Positions 27-49,727 of a stretch of DNA of 64,000 nucleotides are shown here, piece by piece. The notes under the pieces are model-generated. The model had not been told where the DNA came from. It saw nothing but the letters and a program-made list of their open reading frames with translations, and ran no database searches. The stretch's first letter is position 1. Each line of letters starts with the position of its first letter. Position numbers and translations under genes: made by a program. Source of the stretch: Lepidodermella squamata (Eukaryota; Animalia; Gastrotricha); assembly GCA_047495785.1 (NCBI GenBank), contig JBLDXI010000042.1, positions 3,038,001-3,102,000 of the forward strand, in the 5' to 3' direction.

Positions 27-437
27 TCATAATACCAACTGGCTAAAATCGTTTTTCTTAACCCGACATCCAGCTGTCAGGAAAGTTTTCCGAGTAGCCA
101 TATGAGGCGATAGCAGCGCTGCTGTTAGGCTGCACTTCTTATTCGGCGCCTTAATTTGACTCGGAATCGTTCTGTTCTTGCGAAACCTATCGAAAGAAAT
201 CAGTTATTTATTGGAAAAAATTACAAAATTTTTATTATACCGTCGCCTTCGGTCGTTAGCTGACGCTGGAGGTCCGTTGTCCATGGGCGTTACAATATTC
301 ACAATATGGCATGGCATAGATTGGCGTCTGGTGAACGAATTGCGGCCATCGATGCTGCTGGCAGAGCCCGATGAATGAAGCTTGGCGAAAACGACAGCGT
401 CAATCACCCATTCGACCATCCGATTAAATAGAGGCAT
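27..437 (-). CDS. Orphan small-protein family, long member L1 (~118 aa; exons 437-241, 186-27)
   Basis: MPLFNRMVEWVIDAVVFAK...RRQSMP...RRR|RFRKNRTIP...SQLVL*. The 54-nt GT-AG phase-2 intron sits in the codon before FRK, as in paralogs L2 and L3. Confidence 0.75.
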
Positions 438-2262
438 AATACTTTTTCAAAATGAAATAAAATCTAATGAATGGCTGAGAATTACGATGAGCGTGTATTC
501 ACGCGCAATCTCGGGATAAAGTTTGATGGTAATTGACAAAAACAGGGCGCTGAACAAAATAAACCAAACATGACATATACGAGGGTCCGCGATGCGAGGA
601 TAACGCCCTGATATTGCATTTAGCCATGTACACTTAATGATCCACTTAGATGCACGTGAATGCAGGTTGGCTTGATAGTGAATTATGCCAAAAAATTAAT
701 ATGTACGCTCGAAAAGATATGTGCCGCAAAACAGGAAATAATTAAAGCTTCTCCTGAGGAAATTCGATGCTTGAGACGTTAGACACCTGTCCATAAAAAA
801 TACTATTTAGGGTACGGGCTTAGCAATAAAGGTACATGCCACGACGATGAGCCATAGCCATGCGATACGCATGTTGTTTTCAATAAGTATAACCAAGGCG
901 AAAAAACGCACGTGATTCTGCGATGTTGTATAGTGCCTCGTTTTAGCGTAAAACCGCTAGAAAATACTATGCGCTAATTTCTTTTTGGGTGCTGTCAAAA
1001 ACCACGCGGGTTTTTTTATTATAGTGACCTATATAAAGTACGAGGAAAAAATTAACTTTAATTATAGCGTGAGAAAATTAGTTGCAAATTTGACCGTTAA
1101 CAAGTGAAAAGTGGGGCTTGGCGAAAGTTTTAACATCGTGAGATATTGATGCCGCTTTGAAGATCAAAGAACATATCAAAGAGAAGCTCATCAGAGTTTC
1201 AGAGAAAATGGGCTTAAAAGTTTGCTAATTTAAAAAAAAATTGCGCTTGAAAAATCAAGTTTGTTTATTGCATCAATTAATAATTCGTCGCGCAATTAAT
1301 TCGGATGTTTTTTTCTTAATGCGCAGTCGAGATTTGTTGGGGTAATCTGAGGTGAGGAATCTAGGTAGATATTCCACAATTTTGATGGAATCACGCTAAT
1401 GCTTCTGCGTCAACCTGAACCGATAAGCCTTTTAGGCGAAACTTTGGGGTCTTCCAACTTTTGAGGTGGATGGGAGCTTCCCAGAGGTCTGAATTTTCGA
1501 AAATTCAAATTTCTCAAGTAAAGCTGTTTAATAACATCTAGGATTCCAAGAATCGTCCCTTATTCAAGTCAGGATACGGCGACAAAACAGCTGTTTCTGC
1601 TGTTATGTCGCGTTTGCTGTTTTGGGCATTTGCTGTTATGACGGTCTGCCCAAGTCAGTACACCTTTTGCCATTTGCTGAAAAATACAGAAAATACTCCA
1701 AACCCAACTTTTCACTTGGTAACGGTCATTTCGATTTTCCTTAACTGACGCATTCTGTGAATTTCGAATCCAATTTGCCGTGTGATTTTCAATTTAATAT
1801 ATAAATAACCAAGCTCAATCGATAAGTATGTGCGCTGTTCGCGATATCGGCTGGCAATATTCGAAGCCTGAAGAACCGAGAGACAATATCGATTTCGATT
1901 ATCGATTATTAGTGATTTTTCCGATATCCACAGTCTCGAAGCAAGCTTTTTCTTCACCTCTGAGGGTACCAGATTGCTTAGTAAGAATGTCCACAGATGG
2001 CAGATTGATAATTGATTAAATTGAAAAATTCAGTATAGCAGAAATTTTGTTCTACGACAGCTACGACACAACATCTTGTGATTTATGTGTGCGACATTAA
2101 TAGAAAAATTGAATCTCGATAACTTGGATAACCATTTTTCAGCGAATATCATAGGCAGCAATTAGGCTAATTGAATTATTGTCATCGCATAAGAAAATAG
2201 ACCAGGCACGACCTATTTTTATTCGTCTTTGTCCTGATCTTACATAGGTACTTATATAATGA

Positions 2263-2677
2263 CTAAACACTGTGTTCATCTACTAAATCAATAGATTCGC
2301 TGAATATTTGACGCCTGTACGCTTTCATCATTTTCGGGCTGAGGCCAACCTGCTGCAAATTCGGAGTCGAGTGAATTTTTTTCCGAAACCTAATTCAAAT
2401 TTATAAAAATTTCAATCGCGAATATTCGGAAAACAACTCACTTAGGCTGTCGCGACGTAGTCGGTGTGTAAGTTTTGTTTGAACTGGCAGCTACTGAACC
2501 TTTTGGCTCGGATTTCCTAGGCAGGGGCTCGGTCTCGCTGGGCCTGCTGGCGTTGTTATCAGACGAATTAGAACCATTTTCCGGCTGTGATTTGTTGTAC
2601 TTGGGAGCTTTAGCTAGAACGACAAGGTCAATAACAAGTTCGACCATTTTGCTGAAAAGTGTCCTCTTCCTTGTCAT
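2263..2677 (-). CDS. Orphan small-protein family, long member L2 (~120 aa; exons 2677-2442, 2389-2263)
   Basis: MTRKRTLFSKMVELVIDLVVLAK...RQP|KFRKKIHSTPNL...DEHSV*. 52-nt phase-2 intron (gtgagt...ttag) at the same position as in L1 and L3. Confidence 0.75.
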
Positions 2678-3396
2678 GTCAAATTGAAATAAGTAAATGA
2701 AAGAATGAATAAATAAGCTACATTTGAAATGAACATCGGCTCGCTAGATTAAATTTATATCCTGCATGTTTTTTTGCTAAAATTCCGTTCTTTGGGAATT
2801 ATGGCTTGATTAATTCTCAGATATTATACAATCAAAGCATTGTAAATAATACTTAGGTATACGTCAGAAAAAATCGCAATTCGAATCCAGCCTGTTATTT
2901 ATGAGATGCGATGTGCCATTGTGTCAGAATTTGGGACATTTGATTCCGCTATGCAATTTTCCTGAAATTTATTATTACAACAATTCATTGATCCAGGATA
3001 GCTCAACGCTGCGGGAAAATGTTCATTGTCGTAATTAAATTAAATTATTTGCATTTTTAGCGGCTTCTAAGATATGACCGATTTTTTCGAGTATTCATTA
3101 GTAAAATACGGGATTAAATGACCTGGCCTCCCTTTCGCGATTTCGCGGTAATTGAAGCTTGCCAGAAAAATATTTAATCCGGATAATAAAGGTATTCGAA
3201 ATCCCACGGATTACTTATCACTAACCGGTGCATCCTTTTCTAGATTTACTCTGCAGTAAAAATTCACGATTATAGACAGCCACGCGCGACATTAAATCTT
3301 AATTAATGAATCTCATTCTGTTCGATTACCCGACAAGTGCAATCGAGTTTTTTCGTCGCTTTTCTATCCTGATCAAAGCTATCATATTGTATCATC

Positions 3397-3770
3397 ATGC
3401 CTAAGGCAATATTTACCCTGTTGAACCGGATGGTGATGTTGTTGAAAGTCGACTCGAAATCATCATCGAAGCGGCGCAAATCAATGGCGCATGAAATAAT
3501 CGACGCGGCAAAGGAAGCCGAGGCCAGGGACATTGAAGCTAATACGGTTTATCACGCCCAGAGGTTTGTCAATTCTGCCGAATTTGATTTTTTCACCTGA
3601 ATTTTTCTGATTTTGTTTTTAGGTTTCGAAAAAGGTCCAACAATCGGAACAAGAAACTGCTGGCTCGTCGAGGCCGCTGTCGATCAATGAGCCTGCCTAC
3701 AGTCTTTGAACACATGACGGAAATAGAGGACGATATAATTGAGGGAGAATTCCAGCGAAAGAGCTGTTAA
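3397..3770 (+). CDS. Orphan small-protein family, long member L3 (~104 aa; exons 3397-3563, 3623-3770)
   Basis: MPKAIFTLLNRMVMLLK...HAQ|RFRKRSNN...RSMSLPTVFEHMTEIEDD...RKSC*. 59-nt phase-2 intron before FRK. The N-terminal helix is more diverged. Confidence 0.7.
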
Positions 3771-4007
3771 CATTGAGAAAAAAATCATTATCAAATTTCC
3801 TCGGCAGAAATTTTTTATTTCGTAATTTTGTGGATAAACCTTTGAAAGGTGGTTAACATTTTAATAAAAATTTAGTACCTATTTACTTCGATAATTTTAA
3901 TTTGAAACTTTGTATGGTAACTTTGTACTATATTGGCTGAAAAGCCTCCTGGTCGCCGATTTCAAATCAAATAATTCTCGGGGAGGAATATTTCTTGACA
4001 TAGGAAT

Positions 4008-4187
4008 CTTTGAACCTTTGAACCTTTGAACCTTTGAACCTTTGAACCTTTGAACCTTTGAAACTTTGGATCCTATCGAACTTCCGGAACCTCTGGACCT
4101 TTGGAACCTTTTGAACCTTCGAAACTTTGGATCCTATCGAACTTCCGGAACCTCTGGACCTTCGGAACCTTTTGAACCTTCGAAACC
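4008..4187. repeat. Tandem repeat: (CTTTGAAC)x6 plus a degenerate unit, followed by two copies of a ~61-bp derivative
   Basis: Directly visible periodicity. Confidence 0.9.
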
Positions 4188-5208
4188 TTTGGATGTTGGG
4201 ACCTCTATTTCTCCTAATTCGAATTGCTCTATACTCCGCTAATCGGTTTCAGATCTCGTTATGTTACACGCAAACATCTCTGAATTCAGGGACCTCAGGT
4301 AAGTACTATTTTCTCCAGCAGTTTATCGATGGCAGTATGAACTCAGTTTGTTTCGGCCAAGTTCCACTTTTACCTCGCCATTCTTTCGCCAAAAAAGCGG
4401 GATTCCTCCTCATTTTCAAACGAATCATCACTGTCGTTCCAGATTCCTGTGATGAAAAAGTCGTGTTTGTTTCTGTTATTATAAGGAATAAGGAAGGATC
4501 GCAGTGCACACTTGTAGTTCTTCATCGCCTCACAGTTATCGCACTACAATTCACGCATGTGACGAAGGTCGCACGTCACGGTTGTTTGCGCAGATCCAAG
4601 GAACAGGATAGCCACGTGAGCTACAAAAGCAATGCCAAGATCTAAATGTTAATTAAACGCCATCTATTTTGCGATGCTCAGTCCGTGTTTTTAATTCTGC
4701 TAAAAGTAAGAAATAATTGCCAGAAGTCTTACCTTCGGAATTGTCTCATTTCACCAGTTATATGTCCTTAAAATGGCCGCGTAATGAGCTGATGCGCAAT
4801 GTAAAAGTATTAAAACCTCGTGGGAATGTCGGGAGATGATGTCGGTTGCCCAATTACTCCTGCGCTCTTAGTCCGGGTTAATTGTGATTTATCTAGAGTA
4901 AGGACGTCCCCTGGCATGGAAAAACCGCAGCATATATATTTTTTTTATGATTTTTATGCCCATTCCAGTCAATCAATCCGGATAATTGTGTTGAATTCAC
5001 ATGTAATCAGCACTCTTATTCTCGCTACAGTACGATGAACCTGAGGTATTGATAGAAAAGCCCCGGTTGGCATAATTTGCGACAGACAATTAATGATGTC
5101 TGAATGTACGCGTAATACTAGGTAAAACATAGGCAAGGGAAGATGATATTTAAATTGCTGTAATATCTGTAATTAACACGAATATTTTCGCCATTGAGTC
5201 CTTATAAT

Positions 5209-5352
5209 ATGCCAGCAGCTTCTATTTTCAATGTTCTGATCGACTTGGTTATCGAGATCATTGTCTACGCCAAGAACATGCCTTACTCGATAACGCTGAA
5301 TACGGGAATCTCGAAAAAGCCTTCACATTGCCCATTCAAACCTTCAACTTGA
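5209..5352 (+). CDS. Microprotein S1 (47 aa), orphan family
   Basis: MPAASIFNVLIDLVIEIIVYAKNMPYSITLNTGISKKPSHCPFKPST*. ATG and stop are aligned with S3-S5; AATAAA lies downstream. Confidence 0.7.
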   Translation: MPAASIFNVLIDLVIEIIVYAKNMPYSITLNTGISKKPSHCPFKPST

Positions 5353-6267
5353 AACGAAGCTGCGCTTTGATAGTTCTGCTGGTGTTCAGAATTATTGCTG
5401 CCATAACATATTCACGCCCGTAGTTTTTTGTGAATAAAAAACGATCATTTTATAGCGAATTGGGTGCTCTAAGTCCTGTTACGGAGTCAGTGCAGAGGTC
5501 GGGGGTTGAGCGGCAGGTAAATTGACCGGTTGCCGGTTGGGTATGGGTCCGCTAAATTCTGGCCGGTTGACTTGTAAACTGAAATTTTCGACGGAAATAG
5601 CAGAAATTGACACGCGGCAGTGGGACTCTCCTAAAAAAGGTTCTGCAACCCCGGAATTCGTCATTTTTATGATTCTGTTCTAGAGGCTGCTCACACCTTG
5701 TGCGGGTTTTACCTACCAACCGGAACCCGTCCTGCGTGATAAATTAAAAGTTATTCTTGAAGGAGATTTTCAGTCCAGATTCCAATAATATTGATTACAT
5801 TAATTTTTCGAAATTGTGTGAAAATTTCGCAAAATGAGAAAGAAATTCCCGCAAACTGTCGGAAACGAGTCGGGAAGATATTTCATATAGACATTTACTC
5901 GAGCTGATATAATTCAATTGAAAAGAACATATTATAAAAGCTGCTTTTACGATTTATATACAGCCTGTCATTGTCATCCATATAATTGTGTAGCCATGGA
6001 CCAAAATTAAATCAGCACCCGCCGTCCTTGATCATGAGGCGTAATATAGGACGCCGCGGCCTCGAAACACCCATTATACATTTCCTCGAAACAAATAATT
6101 AGCAAAAAGACAGCAATGCATCATCAAGTTTAACTTTGTACCTCAATAAAAAAATCACATTTCGTCTAATTTTCTGCGAAACGCTCTGCGTCCTATACTA
6201 AGTCTCATGTCCTTAGCCAAGCAGGCGCTTAATTCTAGGGTTGGAACTTCATTTTTAGTGGTGGAAA

Positions 6268-6380
6268 TATCTTTTGATCGGCTTGGTTTTCGAGATTATT
6301 GTCTACACCAAGAACATGCCTCACTCGAAAACGCTGGAGAGAATGTCGAAAAAGCCATCACATGGAAAACTTCAACTTAA
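6268..6380 (+). pseudogene. Decayed microprotein copy S2
   Basis: LLIGLVFEIIVYTKNMPHSKTLERMSKKPSH in the family frame. No in-frame family ATG, and the terminal KTST* is in another frame. Confidence 0.65.
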
Positions 6381-6856
6381 AACGAAACCGCGCTTTCTAT
6401 TTTCCTATTCTATCAATCCAGCTGTTCCGTTGTTATTTTTGTCGAAATCTTATACGTTTTTACGTCTTCGTGCCCATGCATCGGGGCGAACATAATATGC
6501 CATATATTCCAATTATGGCGTTCATTAAATTATATCGAAATGTCGGAAAATGAGAAAACGTCGCAAAAAGGTCGCTTTGCGAACACGTGTCCGGTTGTGT
6601 GAGGGAGGTACTATCTGTAGACCGTTTATACTCAAACGCTCTTAGTACAAGTTTCAAAAATAATTTTGGTTTGACAACCTGAAAATGTGCGTTTTAGAAT
6701 AGCCTGCAGCTGCTTTATCATCTGAACCGTCGAACAGAACATTTGCAAAAATAGATTGCCTTATGCTTATGCTAAGCTGTCATCCGGATAATTTAAGGGC
6801 GAATAATGAACCCAAATGAATAACCAACACCCGTTTATGACATGTAGGAGCTATAA

Positions 6857-6972
6857 CTGATAGAAATTCCATCGGTCGGCATCACCTTTGAAGGACAGCT
6901 AATGATTTGTGGCTGAATGTACGGGTTTACGGGTTGTACAACAAACAGGTCGGGGAAGACGATATATAAACT
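6857..6972 (+). promoter_or_regulatory. Conserved upstream block of the microprotein genes (TGATAGAAA..CCATCGGT motif and GGGAAGAC-ATATATAAA TATA-like box)
   Basis: Homologous blocks lie upstream of S1 (~5049-5155), S4 (~22135-22245, minus) and, in part, S5 (~25145-25165, minus). Confidence 0.5.
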
Positions 6973-7038
6973 GAAATAAATTTGCTATAATTAAGAATCA
7001 CATTATTTCTCTTAAATTGCGAGTCCTGAATCTTTAGG

Positions 7039-7191
7039 ATGCCAGCCTCTGCTTTCAACCGTTTCATCGACTTGGTTATCGATGTCATTGTCTACGCTAA
7101 GAACATGCCTTATTTGAAAGCATTGCGAAGATTGTCGAAAAAATCTGTCGATATTAGCTCAGATCGTCCTTGCAGGCGGGCTTCAACCTAA
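7039..7191 (+). CDS. Microprotein S3 (50 aa), orphan family
   Basis: MPASAFNRFIDLVIDVIVYAKNMPYLKALRRLSKKSVDISSDRPCRRAST*. Confidence 0.8.
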   Translation: MPASAFNRFIDLVIDVIVYAKNMPYLKALRRLSKKSVDISSDRPCRRAST

Positions 7192-7319
7192 CGACGTGAC
7201 GTTTCATCTTCATCTCAGCTTATCAATTAAATCCTGCTGGTGATCAGAATAATTGCAGCTATATGAGCTGCAGATAATTTCAACGTTACACTTATTGCAA
7301 ATAAAATGGTCATTTTATA

Positions 7320-9372: not shown

Positions 9373-11478
9373 TCAATCATCGTCTGAAGATCCCATCGGA
9401 AAAACCGCCGACGGTATTCGCCGAGCCCCGGCTTTGATCGGTGACCACAACAAAATCCCAATCAAAGCGTTCGAAATCACAAGAGAAACTCCGCTAACCG
9501 TTGCTATGAAATCGGCCTGATTTAAAGCTCGAAACGAACACGCCGCAAAACTGGCCCCGAATGAGTATAAAACAGTCGCGGCAAACGCAGCAGTTCGAAC
9601 AAGGTCAATGTCCTTAGTCGCAAAGTGGCCGATTCTCTTCGAAATAGTCTGCATTGTTACAACAGAACCGATAAGTAAAACTAGCCAGTGAATCGAGACT
9701 AGAACTGAAATAAAAATTTCTCCCGATGTCGACTCGCAGATTTTCTCGTAAATTTCCCGCTGGGTATCAAGAACTTTGTCGTAGAAAATTTCCGAAAATT
9801 TTTCCGATTTTACTGGCAAACTTAACGAAGAATACCAAGCGCCGAAAATAGCTCCATTCAGTACGGTGATTGAAGCCTGCCCGGCTATAGTCAGCTTTTC
9901 CTTACGTTCGTAAGAAATTTGAGCCAAAGTCCTAGCTAGTCGTGATGATCGGCGCCTGTGTCTACTTCTCCGCCGACCAGGGGGTGGATGCGGAGGTGGG
10001 TTGACAACCTTCCCATGGGCATCGAAGCTTTTCTCAACGATTTTAACCTCATGTTTGTACAGCGCCATTCTGAACAACAAGAAGCCGCCTAATAGGGACA
10101 TTCCGATCGCGATGAAAATCGGGTAAATTGGGCAGAAAATCAGGTCCAAATACCATTCGGCAGTTGGTGACCCGGCAAAACCCGATTGAAATAAAAAACT
10201 CGAAATCGCCGCTAAATCAAGAAAAATCGCGCCTAAAACGCTTAGCGACTTGCTGTACGGTAGTGAAACAGCTATTTTCGGGTTATTTCGGTCAGTGATC
10301 AGGTAGAAAATAATTCCGATTTTGAACAAGCATAACGAGCCGCTGATTATTAGGGCGGCCGTGAAGCTTTGCCGAGACATGTAAATGAAGCTGGAATCGA
10401 TGTTTAGCGGTTCCGATGGCGGTAAGGTCACGCAATAATTAATCGAGCAATTAACACGAGGTCGCGTTTGATTGAACGCCCTCAAATTCGGCAATGTGGT
10501 CACCCTGCGAAATTGCGCCTCTTGCCAGCCAATAATCAAATTTTCGTCCATATCATTCGAATGATTTTCTAGGCTTGACTTAACCAAAGTCGAATTGCCA
10601 GCGCTAGATTGAATGGCTAAGGATGTCCGATAAACTGCGGCTTGCAAATGTAGGTCACCGTAACGTTTTTCACCCGTGAAATTTGAGAATTTTGAAAATC
10701 GGTCAAAATTAAATCGCCCAATCCATAAAACAGATTTTAGTTGTTCGGCAAGCATTTTTCGGGAGCAATAACTCGGAATTTCCGGGTAGCTCGGGTCGAG
10801 CCCAGCTTCGGGTCGCGCGATAAATAAATACCGTGACCCGGTAATACCCGATCGGTAAGTCGCGCACAAAAACGTCGCAAATGCCGCTCGGCTTGAAATT
10901 TCAATTAAAATTATTCTAGCGTCAGATATTGCGAGAGATTTCACCAGATTTCTCTCCTCGTCCTCCGCAACTCCAAGCCAAGCTAGCGTGACATTCCCGG
11001 CAATTAACATAGCAGTCGCCAGTCGGGTATTACCATTTGAAAGGTCCGAAGTGGTTGTTAAAATTCCGATTTTTTCGAATTTCGCCATAAAAGCGATGAA
11101 GTAAGCTCTTTGGTTGATTGAACTGCGAGAATTCGATCTCATAACATTGTCCGACTCCACATTTACCGGGTCCATTCCTAATTGATTGAAGAAAATTTGA
11201 TCGATGTTTGATATTGTCGGGGAAACCGTAATAATTCCGCCATTGGAGCCGGTGATTTTTCTCGAAAATTCGACAATATTTTGCGGTGAGCAAATCGCCA
11301 TTGATTCGTCGCCGAAACCGTCGAATTGGCTCAGCTGGTGGTTGATTGTCGAGCATTTATCGGCGTCGACGTGGGGCAGTAAAAAAATTACGCTCAGTTC
11401 AGTGATCATCGCCTCGTTTTTGTCGGTTATGAATGAAATGACAGTAATCAAGCTGATAGCAAGCCATGACTTTAGCAT
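9373..11478 (-). CDS. Divergent GABA-B-like class C GPCR (signal peptide, shortened Venus-flytrap domain, 7TM), intronless
   Basis: SDARIILI and FLCATYRSGITGSRYLFI match GABA-B VFT motifs; IAVSLPYSKSLSVLGAIF resembles GABA-B ICL1/TM2; seven hydrophobic segments. First ATG at 11478. Confidence 0.8.
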   Translation of the reverse strand: MLKSWLAISLITVISFITDKNEAMITELSVIFLLPHVDADKCSTINHQLSQFDGFGDESMAICSPQNIVEFSRKITGSNGGIITVSPTISNIDQIFFNQLGMDPVNVESDNVMRSNSRSSINQRAYFIAFMAKFEKIGILTTTSDLSNGNTRLATAMLIAGNVTLAWLGVAEDEERNLVKSLAISDARIILIEISSRAAFATFLCATYRSGITGSRYLFIARPEAGLDPSYPEIPSYCSRKMLAEQLKSVLWIGRFNFDRFSKFSNFTGEKRYGDLHLQAAVYRTSLAIQSSAGNSTLVKSSLENHSNDMDENLIIGWQEAQFRRVTTLPNLRAFNQTRPRVNCSINYCVTLPPSEPLNIDSSFIYMSRQSFTAALIISGSLCLFKIGIIFYLITDRNNPKIAVSLPYSKSLSVLGAIFLDLAAISSFLFQSGFAGSPTAEWYLDLIFCPIYPIFIAIGMSLLGGFLLFRMALYKHEVKIVEKSFDAHGKVVNPPPHPPPGRRRSRHRRRSSRLARTLAQISYERKEKLTIAGQASITVLNGAIFGAWYSSLSLPVKSEKFSEIFYDKVLDTQREIYEKICESTSGEIFISVLVSIHWLVLLIGSVVTMQTISKRIGHFATKDIDLVRTAAFAATVLYSFGASFAACSFRALNQADFIATVSGVSLVISNALIGILLWSPIKAGARRIPSAVFPMGSSDDD

Positions 11479-13207
11479 GTTATTTAGCAATTGAAATGCG
11501 AAACTGTTGTTCTAGAGAGATTTACTTTGAATTGAATATTTAAGAAATGTGTACCTTATAACTTGCGTCTTTGGAGAAGATAATCATAAGAAAATGCCGG
11601 GGTGACAGGCGTAATCTTTACCTGCTTCGCACCACAAGATCGATTTTCAGACACTTTTTGCATCTTTGCCGCCAAGGTAATTGGCAAGTGCACTTTGCCA
11701 CGCTAGACGCCCCATAGGTAATTACAGGTAGGGTGTATCATTTTCCACCAATTATTATCACCAAATTTTGCGATAATTAAGCAAAATTTGATTAAGAATA
11801 GCTATACGGTTTTAAAATATCGCCAACAAACGGGGAGAGAAATGTTTAAAAATAGAACTATAGTGGGATTTCATATCAAAAATAGTTAAAATTCTCGCGC
11901 CATAGTTTGGCGTGAATTCAGACTGCTTATAAAAGGAACAATCCATAAAAATGTGTCATTTAATATTTTTCTAAAAACTTTCTAATTTCAAAATTTTCTA
12001 AAACTTTTTGTAAGCATATCTCTTATAGGTAGTGCACCACGTTTTTTTAACAAAATTGTTTTTCAAATAATTGTCATGTTCTTGTTCTCTAATTAGGTAT
12101 CTAATAATAATCATAGGTGGGCATTATTCGGAAAATCGCAGAAAAACTGCAGAATTGTATGAATTGTATGATAATTTGAAAAATGGGCCCAGCACTTAAT
12201 TTTTCAGATTCTTTACGATTTCGGCGTTTTCGTTTTTTGGTCGATACTGATGCCCTCCCTGAACCTAGAATTTTGTATTTCAGCTATATTTGGCGCTCTA
12301 AGCTACGTAGAAAAATTATCGATGTTGGGTTTCAAGACGGCTGATATCGGAAAAATCACCGATTTGTAAAAACGATACTTGGAATCGATATCGGCTCTGC
12401 AAGCTAAGTATTACTCGTAAACTGACCGCTTATAGCTTATAAACTACGCGTAATATGAAGATCTATCAGTTAGGCCTGATAACAAAATATTTAGATTCTA
12501 GTGAGGGCATAAAACTCGAAAAACAAAGTGGAAATATAGCGCTGGAATCTCAAAATTAATGCTGGAACCATAAATTTAGGGTGCGCACTTGCCAGATCCT
12601 TGAAAAATGCAAATTGGCAGATGAAATTTTCATCTTTTGGCTCAGCTTTCACTTTTGGTTTCAAATTTTGTTTCGCTAAAATTGTATATGTAATGTCCCA
12701 AATTAAAACGCGGCAAATTCCTGTAGTTAATTTTACACCTTCCGCCACCTCGAAAAGTTCTTCAAAGTCTACTCAGAGTAAACAAGCCCCATACCGCAGT
12801 TACGCCGACTATCGCGATATAGCATGCGTTATCAATTGCGATAATCACATGTCCCGACCGGATGCAGGCGCGGCGAGGATTAAAACCGACATCGGTAGCA
12901 AGAACGGCGGTTCCGGTAAAAATTACCACGCGCGCGCGCGGCGCCGCCTTAAAACTTCAAAGGCCGCACACATGTTACCGCGTTTATGGTACACGATAGC
13001 GATGTCCCGTTATCAGCTAAAAATAGCAGCCGGCACCTAAATTCCGCATCTTTGCTACCAGTCCTAGCTTTAAAGAATTGAAGTTATTAATGAATAGGCG
13101 ATTCATTTATTTCCTTACGACCTGGTTTTGGCGCGCGCAGGCATGTTTTTTTTCCTTTCGAATTTCTTCTCATCACTATTATCAGTCATAAAAAAAATTA
13201 CGTTATA

Positions 13208-15343
13208 CACTTTTCTATCGTGCACATTGGGCATTATTATATAGTGTGCACGACGGCCGTGCACGATGAAAATGTCAGTCTCACTTTTGTCAGGCTTTAA
13301 AAATCATTTCGGTCGATTTTAAAAATAACCGGGCAGAATAAAACGGTTAAATTTTATATCAGCATTATCGGGCTAAGGAGGTCTATGTAATGGATCAGAT
13401 CATTTATTTACAATTTGTCGCGTTTAAAATTTAGCTGTGCACGACGGATCTTGCACGACCTAGTAAGGACCAGTAATTAAATCGCCGATAATTACCGCGC
13501 CCGTACTCAAACATATATAATATAGGGAATAGTGCGCGCACCTTGATTGAGGTTATTAGCGCGCGCGGGACGCTGTACTCAAACATGAAACCGTATTTAT
13601 TACCTTATAAATCGGTAAAATCAGAAATAATATTTCTTGTTTTGAGATTTTAATTTTAATTTTTATTGGACGCGCCTCCTTCGTCGGCGCGAGCGCGCTA
13701 TTTTAATTTCTACCAACTGACCCATCCTTCTCATTTCTACATTTTTGATCTATAGCCATCAAGGCCGAGAAGCGTCCAATTGGGTCTGGTTTGTTGCTAC
13801 TAAAATCGGGAAAATCAGACAAAATATTATTACCTTATTTCTTGTAATTTTTGTTTAATTTTTTGTGGACGCGCCTCCTTCGTCGGCGCGAGTAATATTT
13901 TTAAATAATTATTGGGAGCGCTCAGCGCATTGTTCTTGCGTATTTGCGGTTTCATTTTAACTCTTTAATTCAATCTGGGACACGCTCCCTGCGGTCGCGT
14001 GTTCGTTTTAAATTGGGTCATTTATTTTCTCTCGTGGCTACCTCATTTTTTAATCTGGTTTATTTATTGTCTTCAGGGCCATTGCTTGATAATTATAATT
14101 GAGATAATAGGTAAAATCAGGAATAATTTTTTTTACTGGACGCGCCCCCCTGCGGTCGGCGCGCATCCCTGTTTTTTAGGGTCATTTATTGTCTCTTTGG
14201 CCGCAAAGAAGCGCGTGCGCAATAATAGTGACCTGGGTCATTTATAATTGTGTCAGGTCAATTATCGGAGCGCGCCTCCCTTCGGTCGGCGCGCACGTGC
14301 CATCTTCTGGGTTTCGGTTTTTTACCGGGTTAGGAATGTGACCCAGGTCATGAAATTATTACGGGAGCGCGCCTCCCTTTGGTCGGCGCGCATATGCCTT
14401 TATACAGGGCTTGAGATTTTATTACAGGTAATGGAATGTGACCTGGGTCACGTTTTTTGGCAGGGCCGGGCGGACGCGGCAGGGGTCTCATTAATTTTAC
14501 GCGGCAGCCCTATGGAATCCTAGTGGGCTGCCGCTGCGGCTGTCGTGATCAACAAAAAAGGGTGTTTTCCTCTATTTTCGGAAAAAGTTGAAATTTTCAA
14601 AAAATCGTAGAAAATCAACGGTTTATGACAGGGCAATTTGGAAATCAGATTCCAAGAGACAATTTGCGACTGAATATGGAAAAAATTAGCAAGACGTAAG
14701 CACACCTCCACAGCGAATAAGCGACAGGTCTATTGATGTCTTATCAAATGAAAAATGGGTGTTATTTTCAATAATTGTAATTTTCATATATATTTAAATA
14801 AATTTAACCAGAATCAAATGGACGCTTCTCGGCCTTGATGACTATAGATCAAAAGTGTAGAAAGAGAAGGATGGGTCAGAAAGGCATCCTAGTTATCTAT
14901 TTTTTTCGTAATTTGGAATTTGCATATTTTACGGCTATTTATAATGGCCTTGTTCCTTCGGTCAATCTCTACAAATTTGAAATGAAATGATGAAAAATAG
15001 GTGAACAAATTTCTCTGGCGCCTTGACCTATATTTCGGAATACGCGCGCACTCAGGTAATTAGCGTGGCCGACTATATTATTGCTGTTAATTATGGGCTG
15101 AATTTTATATAATTTTTATCTCGCTGATTTTTCACTCGATTTTCATCGGGTAAAATTTGTTAGTCTCCGCTTGGCGAATATTATGTGGCTGCAAATTTTC
15201 AATTTTTTTAAATTAAAATTGTGAGAATTATAGCGTTTTGAAATTTTAAAGTACTGGCATGTGTGAATGACCTAGTGCGTGTGCACGATGGCCTGGTAAC
15301 AGTCGTGCACACTAATATTAGGCACTGTGCACGAAAAAAAGTG
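13208..15343. mobile_element. Nested non-autonomous inverted-repeat elements with an internal GC-hairpin array
   Basis: Outer imperfect IR 13208-13260 / 15298-15343 (CGTGCAC motifs); inner ~75-bp IR 13717-13792 / 14805-14879; about six GCGCGCC..TTCG/TGCG..GGCGCG hairpins. Confidence 0.65.
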
Positions 15344-15511: not shown

Positions 15512-16132
15512 ATGCATCGCCATTTTCCGACCGATAGCGCGTCAAACAAGCGATTCCGTTCGAATGAAAACATCGAGAATAACGCTGAAATTTCGGCGAT
15601 GAGTACTCCGTCGAAATTTATGACCCTTGCGCAACTCTACCTGCCAGTTAGCCGCATCGCAAGCCCTGATGACCCGGTTCAATTTGATTACTACGAAGAC
15701 GCGACTAATAATAGCAACGACCGAGACCAGTTCGAGCAGTGTCAAATCAGTTTTCCTGAGATAGAAAGCGAGGAGGATGAAGCTGAAGAAAAGCGCGCGA
15801 GTGTGATTTGCTGCCATTTCTGCTCGACTGGTTTCGCTACGCCTGAACAGCTTCACCGTCACGAAGTTGCCGAGCATTCAGCTACGAATTTCAGTTTTAC
15901 TTCAAGCGAGTCGGCGAATAATTCTTCGATAAATTCGACGATTAATTCGACGACGACGGCGGCGGGTAAATTCAACTGCCCGGCGTGTTGCGGCGATTTT
16001 AGCGCCACGTCAGAGTTTTTGCGGCACCTGGTTGTTGCGCACCCTGAGACGCGCCAGTTTCCGTGCCCGGTTTGCTGGCAGACCCAGTCGACGCTGTTCA
16101 ACATGTACTGCCACGCGTTGTTGCACTATTGA
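15512..16132 (+). CDS. C2H2 zinc-finger protein (3 fingers, 206 aa)
   Basis: CHFC..HEVAEH, CPAC..HLVVAH, CPVC..HALLH; GC-rich coding bias. Confidence 0.85.
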   Translation: MHRHFPTDSASNKRFRSNENIENNAEISAMSTPSKFMTLAQLYLPVSRIASPDDPVQFDYYEDATNNSNDRDQFEQCQISFPEIESEEDEAEEKRASVICCHFCSTGFATPEQLHRHEVAEHSATNFSFTSSESANNSSINSTINSTTTAAGKFNCPACCGDFSATSEFLRHLVVAHPETRQFPCPVCWQTQSTLFNMYCHALLHY

Positions 16133-18719: not shown

Positions 18720-21700
18720 ATGGATCTTCGTTTAAGAAAGACTGACAACAACGATTCCGAGGCTGGTAGCGTCAAGAGCCAGCCGATTTTCAGCACGCCG
18801 AAGCCGATGGATTACGACATTCCTTCAACCTATACAGCCCCAGCTTCGCCAGCTACAACCGATTCGACCTACATCGACATTCTAGGAACGCCAACGCAAC
18901 CGATTCGCATGCATAGCAACAACAGCGAGGAAGCCGAAATAATCGACGAAGCCAACGAAAGCAGCGCCGAATCTCACAATTCTACGTCGAATTTTGTGAA
19001 AGAATCATCGAAATCTCCGAAAATTGCCGGGGCCTACAGAGTGGTGAATGGGCGTTATGTCTGCCAATTTTGTGATAATACCTACGGCGCCAGGCGGTCT
19101 CTTCGCGACCATGAGCGTAAAATGCACCCCGAGCAGCTGGTCAACGCGCCTTTCTCGTGCAGCCGCTGTTCGTTGTCGTTTTTCAGCAAGGTGTCCCTGG
19201 CGGCGCACGTGCGGTGGTCGTCGCTGTGCCGCAAGTCGCAGCGTGGCGGCGGTAAGGCGACGAGTGGCGGCACGCCTAGCAAGCGCCGGTCAACCGATGA
19301 GAATATTATCGCGCAACTCGATGCCATGTCGCCTGTTTCAACTACCAGATACGTTAGTCATTTAAAATTATTGGCTGCAGCCTTTCATACTTCATATTTA
19401 TTTTTCATTCAATTCGAGCTGGAAACGTAATGCGGACACTTGTTTTCGGTTTTAAAAACAAAAAACTGGGTTCCGAAAACGTAGCCAATTTTTTCCGCTT
19501 GAAAAATAGTGCAGAATCTTTATAATAACGAATTCGTATGATGCCAGCAAAAAACGTTCTCTATAAAATAATAGTTCACTACAAACGAGAGTTTGCTTGA
19601 TTTAGCTTTATTGGGATTTTCTCGATTTTCGGCACTGATCCGATTCGGCTGAAGATTCACGATAGGAGTCATCGCATGGAGAATTATATTCTTCAAGAAT
19701 TTCTAATTTGGCTTCTTAGCCTTCATTTCATTGCAGTTAATCGACCTTAACCAAGCCCTAACCCTAAACCTAACCCTAACCCTAACCCTGACTTCTAACC
19801 CTAAACCCAACTCTTTTTTTAAATTAAACCTGCCGAGAGATATCGCGATTTAACCGAAGAAATTAAACATTTACAGGAGAAAACCCCGATGGTAACTGGT
19901 TCGGCAATTTTCGGTATTTTGCCCGCTTGGACCAAATTACTGAGGAATTTTTTACCCCATCCACAAGTGATATGATTGATTACTATTCCAGTGATTTATT
20001 TGAAATTTTTCAACATTTTTCTGGCCATGAGATGTGACTTTCATTTTAGAGTTTCGGAACCATTTTTTGCTAACGTTACTTACGTATGGGACACGCAGTT
20101 TGTATGAAATTCTAACAATTTCATTCATAATTATGTATGAAGAAAGTATATTATATTGAGTTCAAGAGCCAGTGAAGATGATGGGTATCAGTGGTGATGA
20201 AAGATCGCGATAAAAATGTGAGATTTTATCAGGAAATTAATCAATTTGTTTCTAAAATTCCCCGATTCCACCGAAAGCAAGTTTGCCTGGAAAATTCTGT
20301 TTCGGTAATTTTAGAAATTTCACCCGCTAAGAGGTTTCTCCGCATTATTTTATTTCGATCGACAAATGTCGTGCTTAGTTATCCGTCTCACGACATTTGG
20401 AAGTTGGAGGCATTTTATTCCTTATGTCTTTATTTGTCTTTCATGCCCGGCTGCGTTCTCACCGGAGCAATCGATCACGAAAACAACTTGTTAAGCCAAG
20501 ATTTCGACGATAAGTAGCGTGCGCCATTATTGCATTATCATCTGCGATCTGGCTCATCTGCAGTTTAATAGCTCTAATATGTCATGAAGATGTCCACCTG
20601 AATTTTAGTTCACGGCGATAATAACAGAATTATTTCCGCTTTCATAGTGACATTTTTTTGAGCCTGAAATTTCTAAGCCGTCTGATGCTAATGGTTATTG
20701 AACGCTGCGCCCTGGTTTCGGCCTGCAACCTTATTTCCACAGACTTAAATACCTACCGGCCGGAAATTTCATATAATTTATCCAATTGGCTTCGACTTGG
20801 ACCTTTGGCTTCTGATGATAATGAAGAAACTGATCCGGAAAAATGAAAACCAAAAGAGTTTTTAGCGGAAACAACTACGACTGTAGTGGTAGCAAAACTG
20901 GGCCCTGAAATAAACTATTTTGCGGCTATAATTGCGGCAAAGCTCCAAATCCACTGAAATTGAAACGAACAAGTGCGCGGGTAAAAATTAATGTCGATTT
21001 TAACAAGCACTTAGCGCCGCCAACTTTTTTGAAGCCGGAAAAATCAGCAGCTGAATTATCTCCCTAGGGGTAAATACCGAAATATTCCCAGAAAATGACA
21101 TTGCTGGCATCTGATCAATGCAAAACAGGGCTCAAGTTATTAGGATATTATATTTATAGTCCTGCCCTTTATTTCGAATCTGCCAATATTCTTTGCACTT
21201 GGCCGAAATATTCGGTTGCTACAGTTCGGTTGTAGTTCGAAATTGTGCGATTTTCTTGGCATCGGTAAACAACTGACATACTATGCGAGAACCCTATATT
21301 TATTATTCTAAATTTTATTTTTGGCTCGTTATTCTGAGTTCATATGAGGTGATACGAGTTGCGAATACTTTGAACTTGGAATCTTGATATCATTAGCCTG
21401 GTCCAAAGGTTCAGCAAGTGCATTTCTCCAAAAGATTCAGCGTAGCTATTTTGATGCTTCTTCTGTTGTTGTTACTGCCTCTTTTATGAAAGCACGAATT
21501 TACGAACCATCCCTATGGGTATTGCTAAATATTCCCAGGGTTTTATCGTCTTTAATACCGATATTAATACCGATCGGCGGAACCTGAATAGATAGCAGGT
21601 GCTGCAGGAAATTCGAACAAATAGAACAGATGGCTTAGTAATTCGGTATTTGCGGTGATATTTAAAAAAATCCTAGTTAAAATGTACATATAAATTAATA

Positions 21701-23825
21701 ATATTATTAATAATATCGACATTGCGCTGAAAATTTGAAAAAATCGAAGCTCACAAAGTTGGGAAAACACACCATATGAGCCGCAAAATATTACAGGTTC
21801 TTGTAAAAATGCAATTTTATTTACGAACCAATTTATGAACATTTTTATGGAATTGAAACTTATGGTTGCAATTATTCAAACCACCAGCAGGATTTTTATA
21901 ATCGATAAGTCGATAAGCGCGTTGTTACGTTGAAGTTCTGCAAGAGCGATCGGAACTATCCACAGACTTTTTCGACCATCTTCGCATCGTTTTTGAATAA
22001 GGCATGTTCTTGGTGAAGACAATAACATCGATAACCAAGTCGATGAAACGGTTGAAAATAGATGCTGACATTTTGAGGATTCAGAAATGATAATTTTCAA
22101 GATTGAAGATTATTTAATATAGCCCTTACAGCAATTGATATATTGTCTTCCCGGACCTATTTAGTATCACCCGTAATACCTTCAGCTGTCAATAACTAGT
22201 TATCCGTCACAAATTTTGCCCTACCGATGGATTTTCTATCAGTAGCTTTTACCGCACTATAATAGCAACCAGGGGTTTTAATTGCATTAGGGTCATTAAA
22301 TAATAAAATTCAAAATGACAACCATCGACATAAAAATCATCATAGTTTGTGGAAATATTTTGTGGGGGAGGAATTGGATCATGAAGCTGCTGGCTATACT
22401 CAAGCCACAATTTGATAACCACGTATCATGACAGCGCTTGAGTAATTGGTCAAACGGTAGCATTGTGACATAATTAATGTATTGGATATGGATGTATCCT
22501 CAATTTTTTGTCGTTTCGTTATATTAAAGAACAACATGATGGAAATAGGCATATCTCGCCTACTTTTGGGCCAATTAAATCTACTACAAAAATAGCAATT
22601 TGTATCGCACTACGTAGGACGGGTTCCGGTCGGCAGGGGAAAGCCGCACAAGGTGTGAACTGACCGAAACTAGTTTCAATGATTAAATCGAGGGAAAGTA
22701 AGCATTAAGAGAGCGCTAGGATGTCCAGGGGTGCTGCTAGATTATTTTCAAAATTTGGCACTCAGCACTAGGAAGTACCGCCAACTGGAATGACTCAGTG
22801 TGGTCATAGCGTGTCCCAAAAGTTGCGCAACTATTTTTTAATTTGGCAACTTTTTGCAGGAAATTCAACTAATTTGTTCAAATTTAACCTAACGAGAGAA
22901 AATTTCTACTTTTATCCGCAATTTAACCGAAGAAATGAAAAATTTACCGGGTAAAATCGGGAAAACCCCGATGGTAACTAGTTCGGTATTTTTCGGTATT
23001 TAACCAAATTTCTCCGGACTTTTTAAATCCCATTAAAAAGTGGCACACTTGATTACTGTTCTCGGGTTTTTTTTAATTAAAAAAAAATTTCTGGCCATGA
23101 GAAACTTCGTCTCTGATATTGGAGTTTCTGAACCCGTTTCCGTGTATTTCCTTTACTTCCTTTACTTATGGGACATCGTGTATGAATGGACTACCGTTGA
23201 ATAGCCCAGGGAAAGGCCAACCTGGACGTGAAAAACACAACCTTTTTAATACAACCTATTTAGGGATAGCAGGTAAATTTTTGAGGAAATTTCGATAAAT
23301 GTATATTTTTATTAAAACTTCGATGAATGCCCAACCGAAGCCGTCTAATCGAACTTCGAATCATAAGCCATTTTCAGATTGCCCTTCCTCCAGGCTATCC
23401 AACGGTACCCCACTCATAGTGTCTCAACGTTAGCATCTTTTCGTTTTTTGAACATTGAACATCGAACATTGCCATAGTCACAATAATTCTGGCAAATAAA
23501 TTTCTACCGATCAACTTGCCAGCCATGATTTCATCGCCAATAAATTATTTCTTATTTAATTTAGTTGCGTAGCAAGTCATATAAACCACAATCAAGTAAG
23601 CCGGATCAGCAGTGGCAGCTACAGCGAGTTGATAGCCGGCGGTTCATGTGTAACTTCTGCGCCAACACGTTTTACGCCTCACTCGACGAACTGCTGATGC
23701 ATTTCAAAATCATCCACTCGAGAAATTTCAACGAAGAACAACTTGCCAACTTCAAGCTCCTCTTTAAAATCGCTGATCGTAGTGACAAGTTAAATCATCT
23801 TGGTATCGAAGAATTCGGACTTTAA
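18720..23825 (+). CDS. C2H2 zinc-finger protein; exon 1 18720-19352, probable last exon 23565-23825
   Basis: Exon 1 has CQFC..HERKMH and CSRC..H..C fingers and ends TAC|gttagt (phase 0). Position 23565 follows a ttaatttag acceptor in phase 0 and encodes CNFC..HFKIIH. The joining of the two exons is inferred. Confidence 0.65.
19757..19810. repeat. Short degenerate (CCCTAA)n telomere-like tract
   Basis: ccctaaccctaaacctaaccctaaccctaaccctgacttctaaccctaaaccc. Confidence 0.8.
19820..20100. mobile_element. Partial copy of the ~370-bp CAGCGTGTCCCA-TIR MITE family
   Basis: Shares CCCCGATGGTAACTGGTTCGG...CTGGCCATGAGA...TATGGGACACGC with 22807-23180, 34699-35010 and 38870-39135. Confidence 0.75.
21925..22071 (-). 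CDS. Microprotein S4 (48 aa), orphan family
   Basis: MSASIFNRFIDLVIDVIVFTKNMPYSKTMRRWSKKSVDSSDRSCRTST*. Confidence 0.8.
   Translation of the reverse strand: MSASIFNRFIDLVIDVIVFTKNMPYSKTMRRWSKKSVDSSDRSCRTST
22807..23180. mobile_element. Full-length Tc1/mariner-like MITE (CAGCGTGTCCCA TIR family)
   Basis: Ends tagcgtgtcccaaaagt and acttatgggacatcgtg|ta; four copies in the window. Confidence 0.75.
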
Positions 23826-24314
23826 AATAATAATGCCAACTTGTTACAATTATTGCGAGAAATTTGATTGGTATAATAAAAATTAAAAGCTTTGTGATTT
23901 ATTTTGCTATTTATGGGCTTCAGATAATAATACAATTATAGATTATAGGAAGATCATTTTGGCTGGAATTTTGCCCAGCTTTAAAAGTCCTGCCTTGAAT
24001 TCCGGTCCTGCCCTTTGAAAAAGTGGAAGCACAAGTCGGAAAAGCGCACTCGATAATTTTCAAGTTGAAGAAATATGACCGTTTTATTTAAAAAAGTATA
24101 ATTGAAACTTTCGGACTTAAGTATAAACGATAAGCAGAATATATTTTACCGGAACCAAATTTACGGCGAGCGGAACCAAATATGCTGCAGCCGAACCAAG
24201 CTCAAAATAACCAACGAGTCACTTTTTGAATAATTTTAGGAATTATTTGAGGCAAATCATGCTTTCAGAATTGAAAAACCACGTCTTACGCAGAATTTTA
24301 CGCTGAATTAAATA

Positions 24315-24726
24315 CCGTAAATTGGGGTGACTTTGCACAGTGGGGTGACATTGGCATATCAAAAATCGAAGGTGGATAGGTAAAGACCCCACGACACACG
24401 AGTGGGGTACCGTTGGATAGGCCAAGAAAAGGCCTGTCTAGATATGTACATTGCAACCTATTTCGGGACAAGAAATTAAAGGTAAGATTTGGGCAAAATT
24501 GTCGAATTTTTATATTTTCGGTAGAACATCCGTCGGTGCTCAACCGAATCCGCCTCATATAAATTAAAATCATATGCCATTTTCGGAGAACCCATCTTTC
24601 AGGCTATCCAACGGTACCCCACTCATGGGGTCTTTACCTATCTTCCTTCGATTTCCGATATGCTAAAGTCACCCCATTTTGGTATGCTAATGTCCCCCCA
24701 CTGTGCAAAGTCACCCCAATTTACGC
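24315..24726. mobile_element. TA-flanked Tc1/pogo-like MITE with long TIRs
   Basis: ta|CCGTAAATTGGGGTGACTTTGCACAGTGGGG ... CCCCACTGTGCAAAGTCACCCCAATTTACGC|ta; related fragment at ~23195-23425. Confidence 0.85.
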
Positions 24727-24839
24727 TAACTACTAATGATTTGGAATTAAATTGGTCAGTCATGGAACCCTTAAAATTTCCGAACAGTGGTTGTAGGCCC
24801 AATAAAAATTTCCATCGATAAGTACCAAGCGCGATGTCG

Positions 24840-24986
24840 TCAAGTTGCAGTCCTGCATAAACGATCGGAACTATCGGCAGAATTATTCGACCATCTTCGC
24901 AGCGTTTTTAAATAAGGCAAGTTCTTGGCGTAGACAATGATATCGATCACCAAGTTGATGAAACGATTGAAAACAGAAGCCGGCAT
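24840..24986 (-). CDS. Microprotein S5 (48 aa), orphan family
   Basis: MPASVFNRFINLVIDIIVYAKNLPYLKTLRRWSNNSADSSDRLCRTAT*. Confidence 0.8.
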   Translation of the reverse strand: MPASVFNRFINLVIDIIVYAKNLPYLKTLRRWSNNSADSSDRLCRTAT

Positions 24987-49672: not shown

Positions 49673-49727
49673 TAATAATTGCTTACATGTCAGACCTAAA
49701 TATGCTATATTCTTTTATATGCATTTT

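Follow-up and report, generated by a model that had tools for sequence, protein, structure and literature searches.

The question raised by this locus is whether ORFs of only 47–50 codons, lying in a 64-kb stretch of Lepidodermella squamata DNA (hereafter the window), are genes in their own right, and what may be the role of the N-terminal helix that they appear to share with three longer genes. All eight loci were confirmed at the positions given in an earlier note made from the sequence. The four intact short ORFs, each of a single exon, are S1 (5209–5352, plus strand; 47 aa), S3 (7039–7191, plus strand; 50 aa, with RRLS and RRAST), S4 (21925–22071, minus strand; 48 aa, with RRWS), and S5 (24840–24986, minus strand; 48 aa, with RRWS), and are accompanied by a decayed copy, S2 (about 6250–6380, plus strand). 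Their paralogy was borne out by alignment and by tblastn within the window, with E values of 1e-19 to 1e-22 among S3, S4, and S5, and of 1e-8 to 1e-9 between these three and S1 and S2. S4 and S5 are located 15 kb away, inverted and in different flanking sequence, one in each of two ~3 kb tandem units (19844–22917 and 22917 to about 25990) that are delineated by the direct-repeat families D2 and D6–D10 with spacings of 2915–3082 nt. The helix matches from the short (S) to the longer (L) genes are weaker, but still significant at the scale of the window for L1 and L2 (S5–L2, 7.8e-5; S3–L2, 8.6e-5; S3–L1, 0.004; L1–L2, 7e-5), as the earlier note had supposed. The helix of L3 is not significant by sequence alone (E = 0.36); this gene is counted in the family because of its identical NRMV, MP start, RRxSM motif, adjacency, and same phase-2 intron. 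No further member was found by tblastn in the window. The S and L genes are thus one paralogous family with its gene structure worked out, in which the S genes arose by tandem and segmental duplication.

The longer members had been taken for ORFs of 67–79 aa read to the stop codon, which proved wrong because such an ORF runs into an intron. Sequence reading and spliced translation gave two-exon genes encoding 118 aa for L1 (27–437, minus strand; exons 437–241 and 186–27; intron 240–187, 54 nt, GT..AG, phase 2), 120 aa for L2 (2263–2677, minus strand; exons 2677–2442 and 2389–2263; intron 2441–2390, 52 nt), and 104 aa for L3 (3397–3770, plus strand; exons 3397–3563 and 3623–3770; intron 3564–3622, 59 nt, phase 2), the latter two being also covered by cDNA contigs. 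In all three L genes, the phase-2 intron directly precedes an FRK motif, which opens exon 2 in L1, and the combination of the intron with the AG/GTTTCGnAA (FRK) pattern occurs in the window only at these genes. Following the helix (residues 3–22), L1 carries RRQSMP at residues 37–42; L3 has a shortened helix, RRKSM at residues 26–30, and RSMSLP within exon 2. The cDNA run X1 was read over a stretch that takes in L2, L3, S1, and S3. Its contigs cover L2 at 2227–2388, 2444–2539, and 2562–2704, with the 5′ end marked by the template-switch oligo at a loose end at 2704. One of the contigs, with a shorter side of 29 nt, jumps 52 nt with CT..AC ends, equivalent to GT..AG on the minus strand. At L3, the X1 contigs lie on 3444–3500 and 3621/3631–3763, with no contig cleanly spanning the junction. 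Hence, L2 is transcribed and spliced, and L3 is transcribed; L1–L3 are, with high confidence, real coding genes. As a separate observation, a possible truncating allele of L2, intermediate between the L and S forms, was noted.

Judging from the sequence around them, the S genes are apparently genes of their own, each with a single exon and lacking the FRK exon. The paralogues are 82–84% identical over the ORF, versus 47–64% in the flanks, where many gaps are also found and the only resemblance is at a shared motif upstream, at a TATA-like box, and over a few bases just past the stop codon. The shared upstream motif is located at 6857–6876 for S3, 22223–22242 for S4, and 25144–25163 for S5 (three occurrences against 0.07 expected), and the TATA or TATA-like box at 5137–5157 for S1, 6953–6973 for S3, and 22132–22152 for S4 (three against 0.01 expected). 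In the three genes with the box, the first ATG after it is the start codon; no ATG is present within 120 nt upstream of S3 and S4, or after the TATA-like box of S1, and a purine occupies position −3 in all S genes. An AATAAA follows the stop codon by 81, 104, and 109 nt in S1, S4, and S3, respectively (three of the four intact genes), and a scan of S5 gave no clear TATA box or AATAAA. S2, closest to S1 (81% identical over the ORF columns), has lost its ATG, carries 10 inserted nt close to the start, and shows a frameshift at each end, one of them lying before the ancestral stop.

The S copies carry several signs of coding. In an alignment of the DNA alone, all indels measure 3 or 6 nt. The annotated frame is the sole frame open in all four intact copies in spite of a divergence of 16–29%, and variable sites are distributed over the three codon positions as 11:7:17. 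When random substitutions were simulated at the observed divergence, a copy stayed intact in just 5–16% of the trials. Pairwise dN/dS values among S3, S4, and S5, estimated between paralogues within one locus, were 0.20–0.38 (Fisher p, 0.0005, 0.002, and 0.016). The helix of S1 gave 0.29–0.38, its diverged tail, devoid of RRxS, gave 0.5–2.8, and whole-gene comparisons with S1 showed no departure from neutrality. Purifying selection, proposed earlier for the whole family, therefore acts on S3, S4, and S5 and on the helix, whereas the S1 tail evolves neutrally. In a second haplotype of S3 (DNA run X2), the ORF differs only by a synonymous change at 7122 and an in-frame codon loss at 7152. Taken together, the S ORFs are probably real coding genes, a judgment held less firmly than that for L1–L3. 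Annotation routinely discards ORFs of fewer than 50 codons, and comparison of paralogues alone can recover them, the signals here being a similarity that keeps to the ORF and the promoter boxes, indels that preserve the frame, and a dN/dS below 1.

Several of these data also bear on the alternative that the S copies are unexpressed relics, left when the 5′ end of an L-like gene was duplicated, and that they owe their similarity to the recency of the duplication or to gene conversion rather than to selection on a protein. The dS values (0.3–0.5) are below the level predicted from the divergence of the flanks, so that the ORF might look more conserved than it is owing to gene conversion or to constraint on the DNA itself. 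The decayed S2, the neutral S1 tail, and what may be a copy-number variant (787 bp) of the S2/S3 unit would also suit relics. In the transcript check called for by the earlier note, L2 and L3 were seen in X1, but the run gave no coverage over S1 and S3, although these are neighbors of the detected L genes; the claim of an expanding family is accordingly upheld as to the paralogous copies, and weakened by the dead S2, the neutral S1 tail, and the transcript result. Conversion, however, would not restrict similarity so sharply to the ATG-to-stop region and promoter boxes, yield a significant synonymous excess, hold all indels in frame, or leave one sole open frame in four copies differing by 16–29%; in addition, S4 and S5 are distant, inverted, and otherwise flanked. 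We consider the relic reading unlikely.

Far less probable still is a non-coding origin of the conserved block, which would then belong to a transposon or MITE or be a conserved RNA or DNA element. Small multi-copy repeats lie close by (5496–5740 and 5864–6231), and the summed depth of the DNA run over S3 is ~2 times that of neighboring bins. The earlier note had named a match to a transposon consensus as a refuting outcome, but neither terminal inverted or direct repeats bounding the S units nor a transposon protein domain (transposase or reverse transcriptase) was found, and the S copies in the window number five; the S block has no match in Rfam, the fold of its consensus RNA is weak (−10.3 kcal/mol, with a covariation term of −1.2), and the coding signatures described above speak against a non-coding block.

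The hallmark of the family, as predicted by modeling, is a strongly hydrophobic amphipathic α-helix of ~20 residues directly at the N-terminus. AlphaFold2 placed this helix at residues 3–22 (pLDDT, 77–88 in S3 and 81–85 in L1), followed in S3 by a second helix at residues 24–40 of low confidence (pLDDT, 52–61) and a disordered end, and in L1 by disorder throughout (pLDDT, 51–55). The consensus of the helix is x-F-N-R-φ-φ-[D/E]-φ-V-I-[D/E]-φ-φ-V-φ-A-K (φ, hydrophobic), with a hydrophobic moment of 0.37–0.52, and the tail that follows is disordered, basic, rich in Ser/Thr, and mostly equipped with an RRxS site. It is conceivable that the helix is a membrane anchor (a signal-anchor, or a short or re-entrant transmembrane segment) that leaves the basic tail in the cytosol: 12–13 mostly aliphatic residues are located at the N-terminus, with Arg/Lys before and an invariant Lys after them, and the 19-residue Kyte–Doolittle maximum reaches 2.0 in S1 and 1.57 in S4. 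A single-pass span of about 19 or more residues with a value above 1.6 is, however, not seen. The hydrophobic stretch falls short of the length that normally crosses a bilayer, and the helix of L3 is shorter still; the Kyte–Doolittle mean stays under the usual cut-off of 1.6 in six of the seven members (0.88–1.57); and two acidic residues (Asp/Glu at helix positions 7 and 11) are kept inside the helix in almost all members. Membrane anchoring is thus a rather doubtful explanation.

We prefer the view that the family consists of real coding genes in which the helix acts as an interaction module, which we hold to be somewhat better than an even chance, leaving aside the competitor mechanism considered below. 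More tentatively, this module may serve for docking or self-association in a soluble or peripherally membrane-bound protein, with the tail as a phospho-regulated linker.

A specific form of docking had been proposed earlier, in which an AKAP-type helix binds the dimerisation/docking domain of the PKA regulatory subunit, and the RRxS motifs are PKA phosphosites, making these proteins very small kinase-anchoring or phospho-switched regulators. The likeness to AKAP helices consists in a short amphipathic helix with paired hydrophobic residues every 3–4 positions, an acidic residue before a small/aliphatic core pair, and basophilic kinase sites nearby. The V-I-D-A-V-V of L1, moreover, resembles the core of the Ht31 peptide, which we take to be I-V-D-A-V-I. 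AKAP helices have 14–18 residues with hydrophobic ones at positions 2, 5, 6, 9, 10, 13, 14, and 17 (PMC12083921), and with Phe set as position 2, seven of these eight positions are so filled in S1, S3–S5, L1, and L2. The eighth position (17) is the invariant Lys, and any very hydrophobic helix would satisfy the periodicity. At positions 8, 12, and 15, where AKAPs have polar residues, the family conserves Leu/Trp, Val/Ala/Leu/Ile, and Tyr/Phe/Leu, respectively, so that the hydrophobic face is far wider; instead of a polar, poorly conserved opposite face, the only polar residues are Asn, Arg, the two Asp/Glu, and Lys. The S/L helix also differs from AKAP helices in being much more hydrophobic, in its bulky "polar" face, and in its invariable location at the extreme N-terminus, and no match to an anchoring helix by sequence or profile was obtained in Pfam or the PDB.

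As for the putative PKA sites, the RRx[ST] motif to which the earlier note had drawn attention recurs in five of the seven intact members (twice in S3, and in S4, S5, L1, and L3), and is absent after the helix in S1 and L2. The motif lies 8–9 residues past the helix-ending Lys in S3–S5 and L3 and 18 in L1, and the hydrophobic residue that completes the PKA consensus (R-R-x-S/T-hydrophobic) follows it only in L1 (RRQSM) and L3 (RRKSM). Shuffling gave probabilities of 0.002–0.18 per protein for a motif picked out after the fact, in basic and Ser-rich tails. Altogether, PKA anchoring with phospho-switching appears improbable, and it is hardly to be expected that the helix would truly dock the dimerisation domain of the PKA regulatory subunit or another four-helix-bundle docking domain, with S proteins competing with L proteins for the kinase. 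If true, the S proteins would be the smallest known self-contained units of anchor and substrate, encoded by stand-alone genes of 48 codons.

No known family had been recognized in the earlier note, and none emerged here: protein, Pfam, PDB, Rfam, and metagenome searches gave no homologue, Pfam up to E = 10 yielded only two unrelated chance matches (E, about 0.06–0.1), and no match was found among PDB chains, anchoring peptides included. The family is so far known from one genome only, as an orphan with no assigned function. Nor was there any sequence match to the micropeptides regulating SERCA (phospholamban, sarcolipin, and sarcolamban). In overall design these resemble the S proteins, being about 30–52 aa long with a hydrophobic helix and a short basic segment, and the RRAST of S3 is presumably also the PKA site of phospholamban. 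The helices of these micropeptides, however, are true transmembrane segments, at least 20 residues long and free of acidic side chains, located C-terminally to the phosphosite; in the S and L proteins the helix comes first, and it has too few residues and too much acidity to span a membrane.

For the preferred reading of the helix as an interaction module, a parallel may be seen in microProteins (miPs), which are small paralogues with a single domain that act by titrating their larger relatives (PMC4807768, PMC9638782). In a similar manner, the S paralogues keep only the presumed interaction module of the adjoining L genes, and are separate genes derived by duplication and truncation. Described miPs, on the other hand, derive from known domains and complexes, mostly of transcription factors, whereas the module is here a presumed one. 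Because the helix is kept and the FRK exon is absent, the S proteins could, by the same "microProtein" logic, use the helix alone to compete for, or to modulate, the binding partners of the L proteins. The locus would bear on a long-standing question only if experiments bore out either kinase anchoring or competition. As a natural series leading from two-exon genes of ~110 aa to single-exon, "helix-only" genes of ~48 aa, it could be used to test the origins of miP-type regulators; in size and domain content, the S proteins (47–50 aa) share just the helix with the L proteins (104–120 aa).

Four intact single-exon ORFs, S1 (5209–5352, forward strand, 47 aa), S3 (7039–7191, forward, 50 aa), S4 (21925–22071, reverse, 48 aa), and S5 (24840–24986, reverse, 48 aa), together with one decayed copy, S2 (about 6250–6380, forward), were confirmed by the ORF listing, direct reading, and tblastn, as the earlier note had described. 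S2 has lost its ATG and contains a 10-nt insertion and a frameshift ahead of the ancestral stop. In tblastn searches confined to the window, S3, S4, and S5 matched one another with E values of 1e-19 to 1e-22, and S1 and S2 with 1e-8 to 1e-9; no further copy was found in the remaining 38 kb. The N-terminal helix of the S ORFs also matched those of two longer neighbors, L1 (starting at 437, reverse) and L2 (2677, reverse), with E values of 8e-5 to 7e-3, and L1 matched L2 at 7e-5 (tblastn, window). The third longer gene, L3 (3397, forward), was not significant by sequence (E, 0.36), and is placed in the family because it has the intron common to the L genes, lies adjacent to them, starts with MP, and contains an identical NRMV as well as an RRKSM site that resembles RRQSM of L1. 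The related helix proposed for all three longer genes is thus retained for L1 and L2 by sequence, and for L3 by other features. The S and L genes together constitute a duplicated family.

The longer genes had been read as ORFs running to a stop, but this reading enters an intron in L1, L2, and L3 alike and has been replaced by two-exon models. The introns (54, 52, and 59 nt in L1, L2, and L3, respectively) are all GT..AG and in phase 2, and in each of the three genes the following exon opens with G followed by TTTCGnAA, encoding FRK; the 13-nt intron/FRK pattern occurs at three places in the window, all of them in L genes. The spliced products are 118, 120, and 104 aa long, respectively. Sequencing reads were aligned over 5,501 nt including L2, L3, S1, and S3, with S4, S5, and L1 lying outside. 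In one run (X1), a template-switch oligo sequence, as used in SMART-type library preparation, extends as a loose end from position 2704, which lies 27 nt before the L2 ATG; coverage is limited to the predicted exons of L2 and L3, except for a multi-copy repeat (5864–6231) just upstream of S2; and one contig omits the 52-nt L2 intron exactly at GT..AG, with a shorter side of 29 nt, just below the 31-nt guideline. Based on these three features, X1 was regarded as cDNA, and therefore transcripts of L2 (spliced) and L3 have been detected, while those of S1 and S3 have not, both showing no coverage in X1, the only RNA-like data set.

The coding nature of the S ORFs was assessed from their pattern of change. 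When the five S loci are aligned over 650 nt, similarity is 82–84% across the ORF, as compared with 47–64% and many gaps in the flanks, and all gaps in a DNA-only alignment of the S copies are of 3 or 6 nt. The annotated frame is the sole frame open in all four intact copies, and random substitution at the observed divergence left a copy intact in 5–16% of trials. Among S3, S4, and S5, dN/dS is 0.20, 0.25, and 0.38 (Nei–Gojobori; Fisher p, 0.0005, 0.002, and 0.016, respectively), and the helix half gives 0.14–0.38 across all pairs, S1 included. The purifying selection suggested previously is therefore supported for S3/S4/S5 and for the helix, but does not extend to the S1 tail (dN/dS, 0.5 to above 1) or to S1 as a whole gene, whose comparisons are not significantly below neutral. 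A second S3 haplotype, seen in a DNA run (X2), shows only a synonymous GCA to GCG change and the loss of one whole codon (Ile39) within the ORF, the codon-less state being shared by S4 and S5, and several substitutions and out-of-frame indels in its flanks. We also considered the S block as a structured RNA, and rejected it on the weak consensus fold, the almost complete lack of covariation, and the absence of a matching Rfam family. Altogether, the S ORFs are likely to be real coding genes and, if so, would be expressed at a low level or in restricted stages.

The conserved parts of the S flanks are promoter-like in character. A 20-nt motif, CTGATAGAAAnTnCATCGGT, precedes the ATG by 171–182 nt in S3 (6857–6876), S4 (22223–22242), and S5 (25144–25163), with three matches against 0.07 expected, and is absent from the L gene promoters; it includes TGATAG, a GATA-type core that may point to a common tissue-specific regulator. 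A TATA-type box is located 60–75 nt upstream in S1, S3, and S4 (three matches versus 0.01 expected), and AATAAA is found 81–109 nt past the stop in the same three genes; neither a clear TATA box nor AATAAA was found for S5 in the motif scan, which counts, like the S1 tail and the lack of X1 coverage over S1 and S3, against the S ORFs being genes. All four intact genes have a purine at –3, and no upstream ATG is present within 120 nt before the S3 and S4 starts, or between the TATA-like box and the start of S1.

Two further X2 contigs depart from the assembly. One joins 6216 to 7004, leaving out 787 nt that correspond to a single tandem unit of S2/S3, in which the repeats are spaced 789 apart. 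It represents either a copy-number polymorphism in which the S3 ORF is fused to the region upstream of S2, or a paralogous locus at another site in the genome. The other lacks one base at 2544, in a GGGCC (G/C) run of L2 exon 1. Being present in a single contig, this deletion may be an assembly error; if real, L2 would end at 61 aa as an S-like helix with a short tail, possibly a natural intermediate between the L and S forms.

In AlphaFold2 models built from small family alignments, the helix (residues 3–22) has pLDDT values of 77–88 in S3 and 81–85 in L1. Beyond it, L1 is disordered (51–55), and S3 has a low-confidence second helix (residues 24–40; 52–61) followed by a disordered end. The consensus of the N-terminal helix reads x-F-N-R-phi-phi-[D/E]-phi-V-I-[D/E]-phi-phi-V-phi-A-K, with V13, V18, and K21 (S3 numbering) invariant in all seven aligned sequences; its hydrophobic moment is 0.37–0.52, with a wide apolar face and a narrow polar stripe composed of N, R, two acids, and K. 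Six of the seven members have a 19-residue Kyte–Doolittle maximum below 1.6, and these low values, together with two conserved acids within the 12–13-residue apolar run, argue against a membrane span or signal peptide. The tails have a basic, Ser/Thr-rich composition, and the PKA-type RRxS sites noted earlier are indeed present as RRx[ST] in S3 (twice), S4, S5, L1, and L3, at modest enrichment over shuffles. RRQSMP of L1 and RSMSLP of L3 also match the mode-1 14-3-3 pattern. The helix or tail was further considered as a WH2/thymosin-like or BH3-like element, a nuclear export signal, or a signal peptide; these readings were dropped because the motif is missing in several members or is satisfied by any hydrophobic helix.

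Across the family, a conserved N-terminal helix under selection is joined to a fast-evolving disordered tail. The family and the selection on it are supported; its functional interpretation is speculative. The helix could mediate docking or self-association, with the tail acting as a regulatory linker, probably phosphorylated. AKAP helices, to which the earlier note likened the S/L helix, span 14–18 residues, are hydrophobic at positions 2, 5, 6, 9, 10, 13, 14, and 17, and have a polar face that is less conserved (PMC12083921). With the conserved Phe set as position 2, seven of these eight positions agree, but position 17 is the invariant Lys, three of the polar-face positions are conserved bulky hydrophobics, and neither Pfam nor PDB returned a supporting match. 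Because of the Lys and the bulky polar-face residues, the fit is no better than that of any greasy helix, and PKA docking of this type seems very improbable. The S proteins retain the helix without the FRK exon, and the simplest mechanism would be competition with, or modulation of, the L proteins at a shared partner, a tentative proposal that we consider less likely than not. As predicted helix-only paralogs of longer proteins, they resemble microProteins, which compete with or modulate larger proteins at a common partner (PMC4807768, PMC9638782).

That the family matches nothing known agrees with every search made. No match was obtained in a word-indexed search with S3, in a HMMER search of 1.84 billion representatives with a profile built from seven members, in exact-sequence look-ups of S1, S3, S4, S5, and a neighboring zinc-finger ORF, in Pfam (E up to 10), or among PDB sequences; two back-translated scans of metagenome contigs, with S and L alignments, gave 214 and 109 pattern matches, none confirmed; the top ESM Atlas score, 0.87, is under the meaningful level; and the literature on small ORFs and orphan genes in rotifers yielded nothing specific. 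These blanks are weak evidence, since tiny ORFs are rarely called, a 17-residue helix falls below significance in databases of this sort, and the proteins of this genome are evidently absent from the collections. By sequence, the family is undescribed; in kind, it belongs with the small-protein families that are taxon-restricted and tandemly duplicated.

This animal genome has introns of ~50–60 nt and dense genes, many in tandem duplicates; the G+C content of the window is ~40%. The genes adjoining the family are orphans themselves or very divergent, and therefore give no sister-species locus via synteny. A 705-aa uninterrupted ORF (9373–11490, reverse), with several hydrophobic stretches and RRRSRHRRRS by eye, has no Pfam domain and no homolog at E ≤ 1e-5 among 8,000 compared candidates. 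An ANF-receptor protein of 760 aa (26764–29046, reverse) has a single relative, 32% identical, and the 3.9-kb metagenome contig on which this lies carries no S-like or L-like ORF. Farther along are a lipase (29805–30623, reverse), a MULE-transposase-like ORF (36510–37589, forward), and at least four or five Fringe/galactosyltransferase-like genes arrayed in tandem (44255–62422), of which the copy tested matched Pfam Fringe with an E value of 3e-18. Two inverted-repeat pairs, 12344–12442/16515–16613 (99 nt, 86%, bracketing 4.1 kb) and 13734–13791/14806–14863 (58 nt, 91%, bracketing 1.0 kb), may be nested cut-and-paste elements; a 206-aa C2H2 zinc-finger ORF (15512–16132) lies within the outer pair, and 41-nt GC-rich repeats occupy 14131–14398. 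A tandem array with an 8–9-nt period (TTTGAACCT-like) is found at 4041–4205 within a 172-aa ORF. Short multi-copy repeats at 5496–5740 and 5864–6231 have a summed X2 DNA depth 3–7 times that of neighboring bins, and 47 nt of the former occur again, inverted, near S4 (22612–22658).
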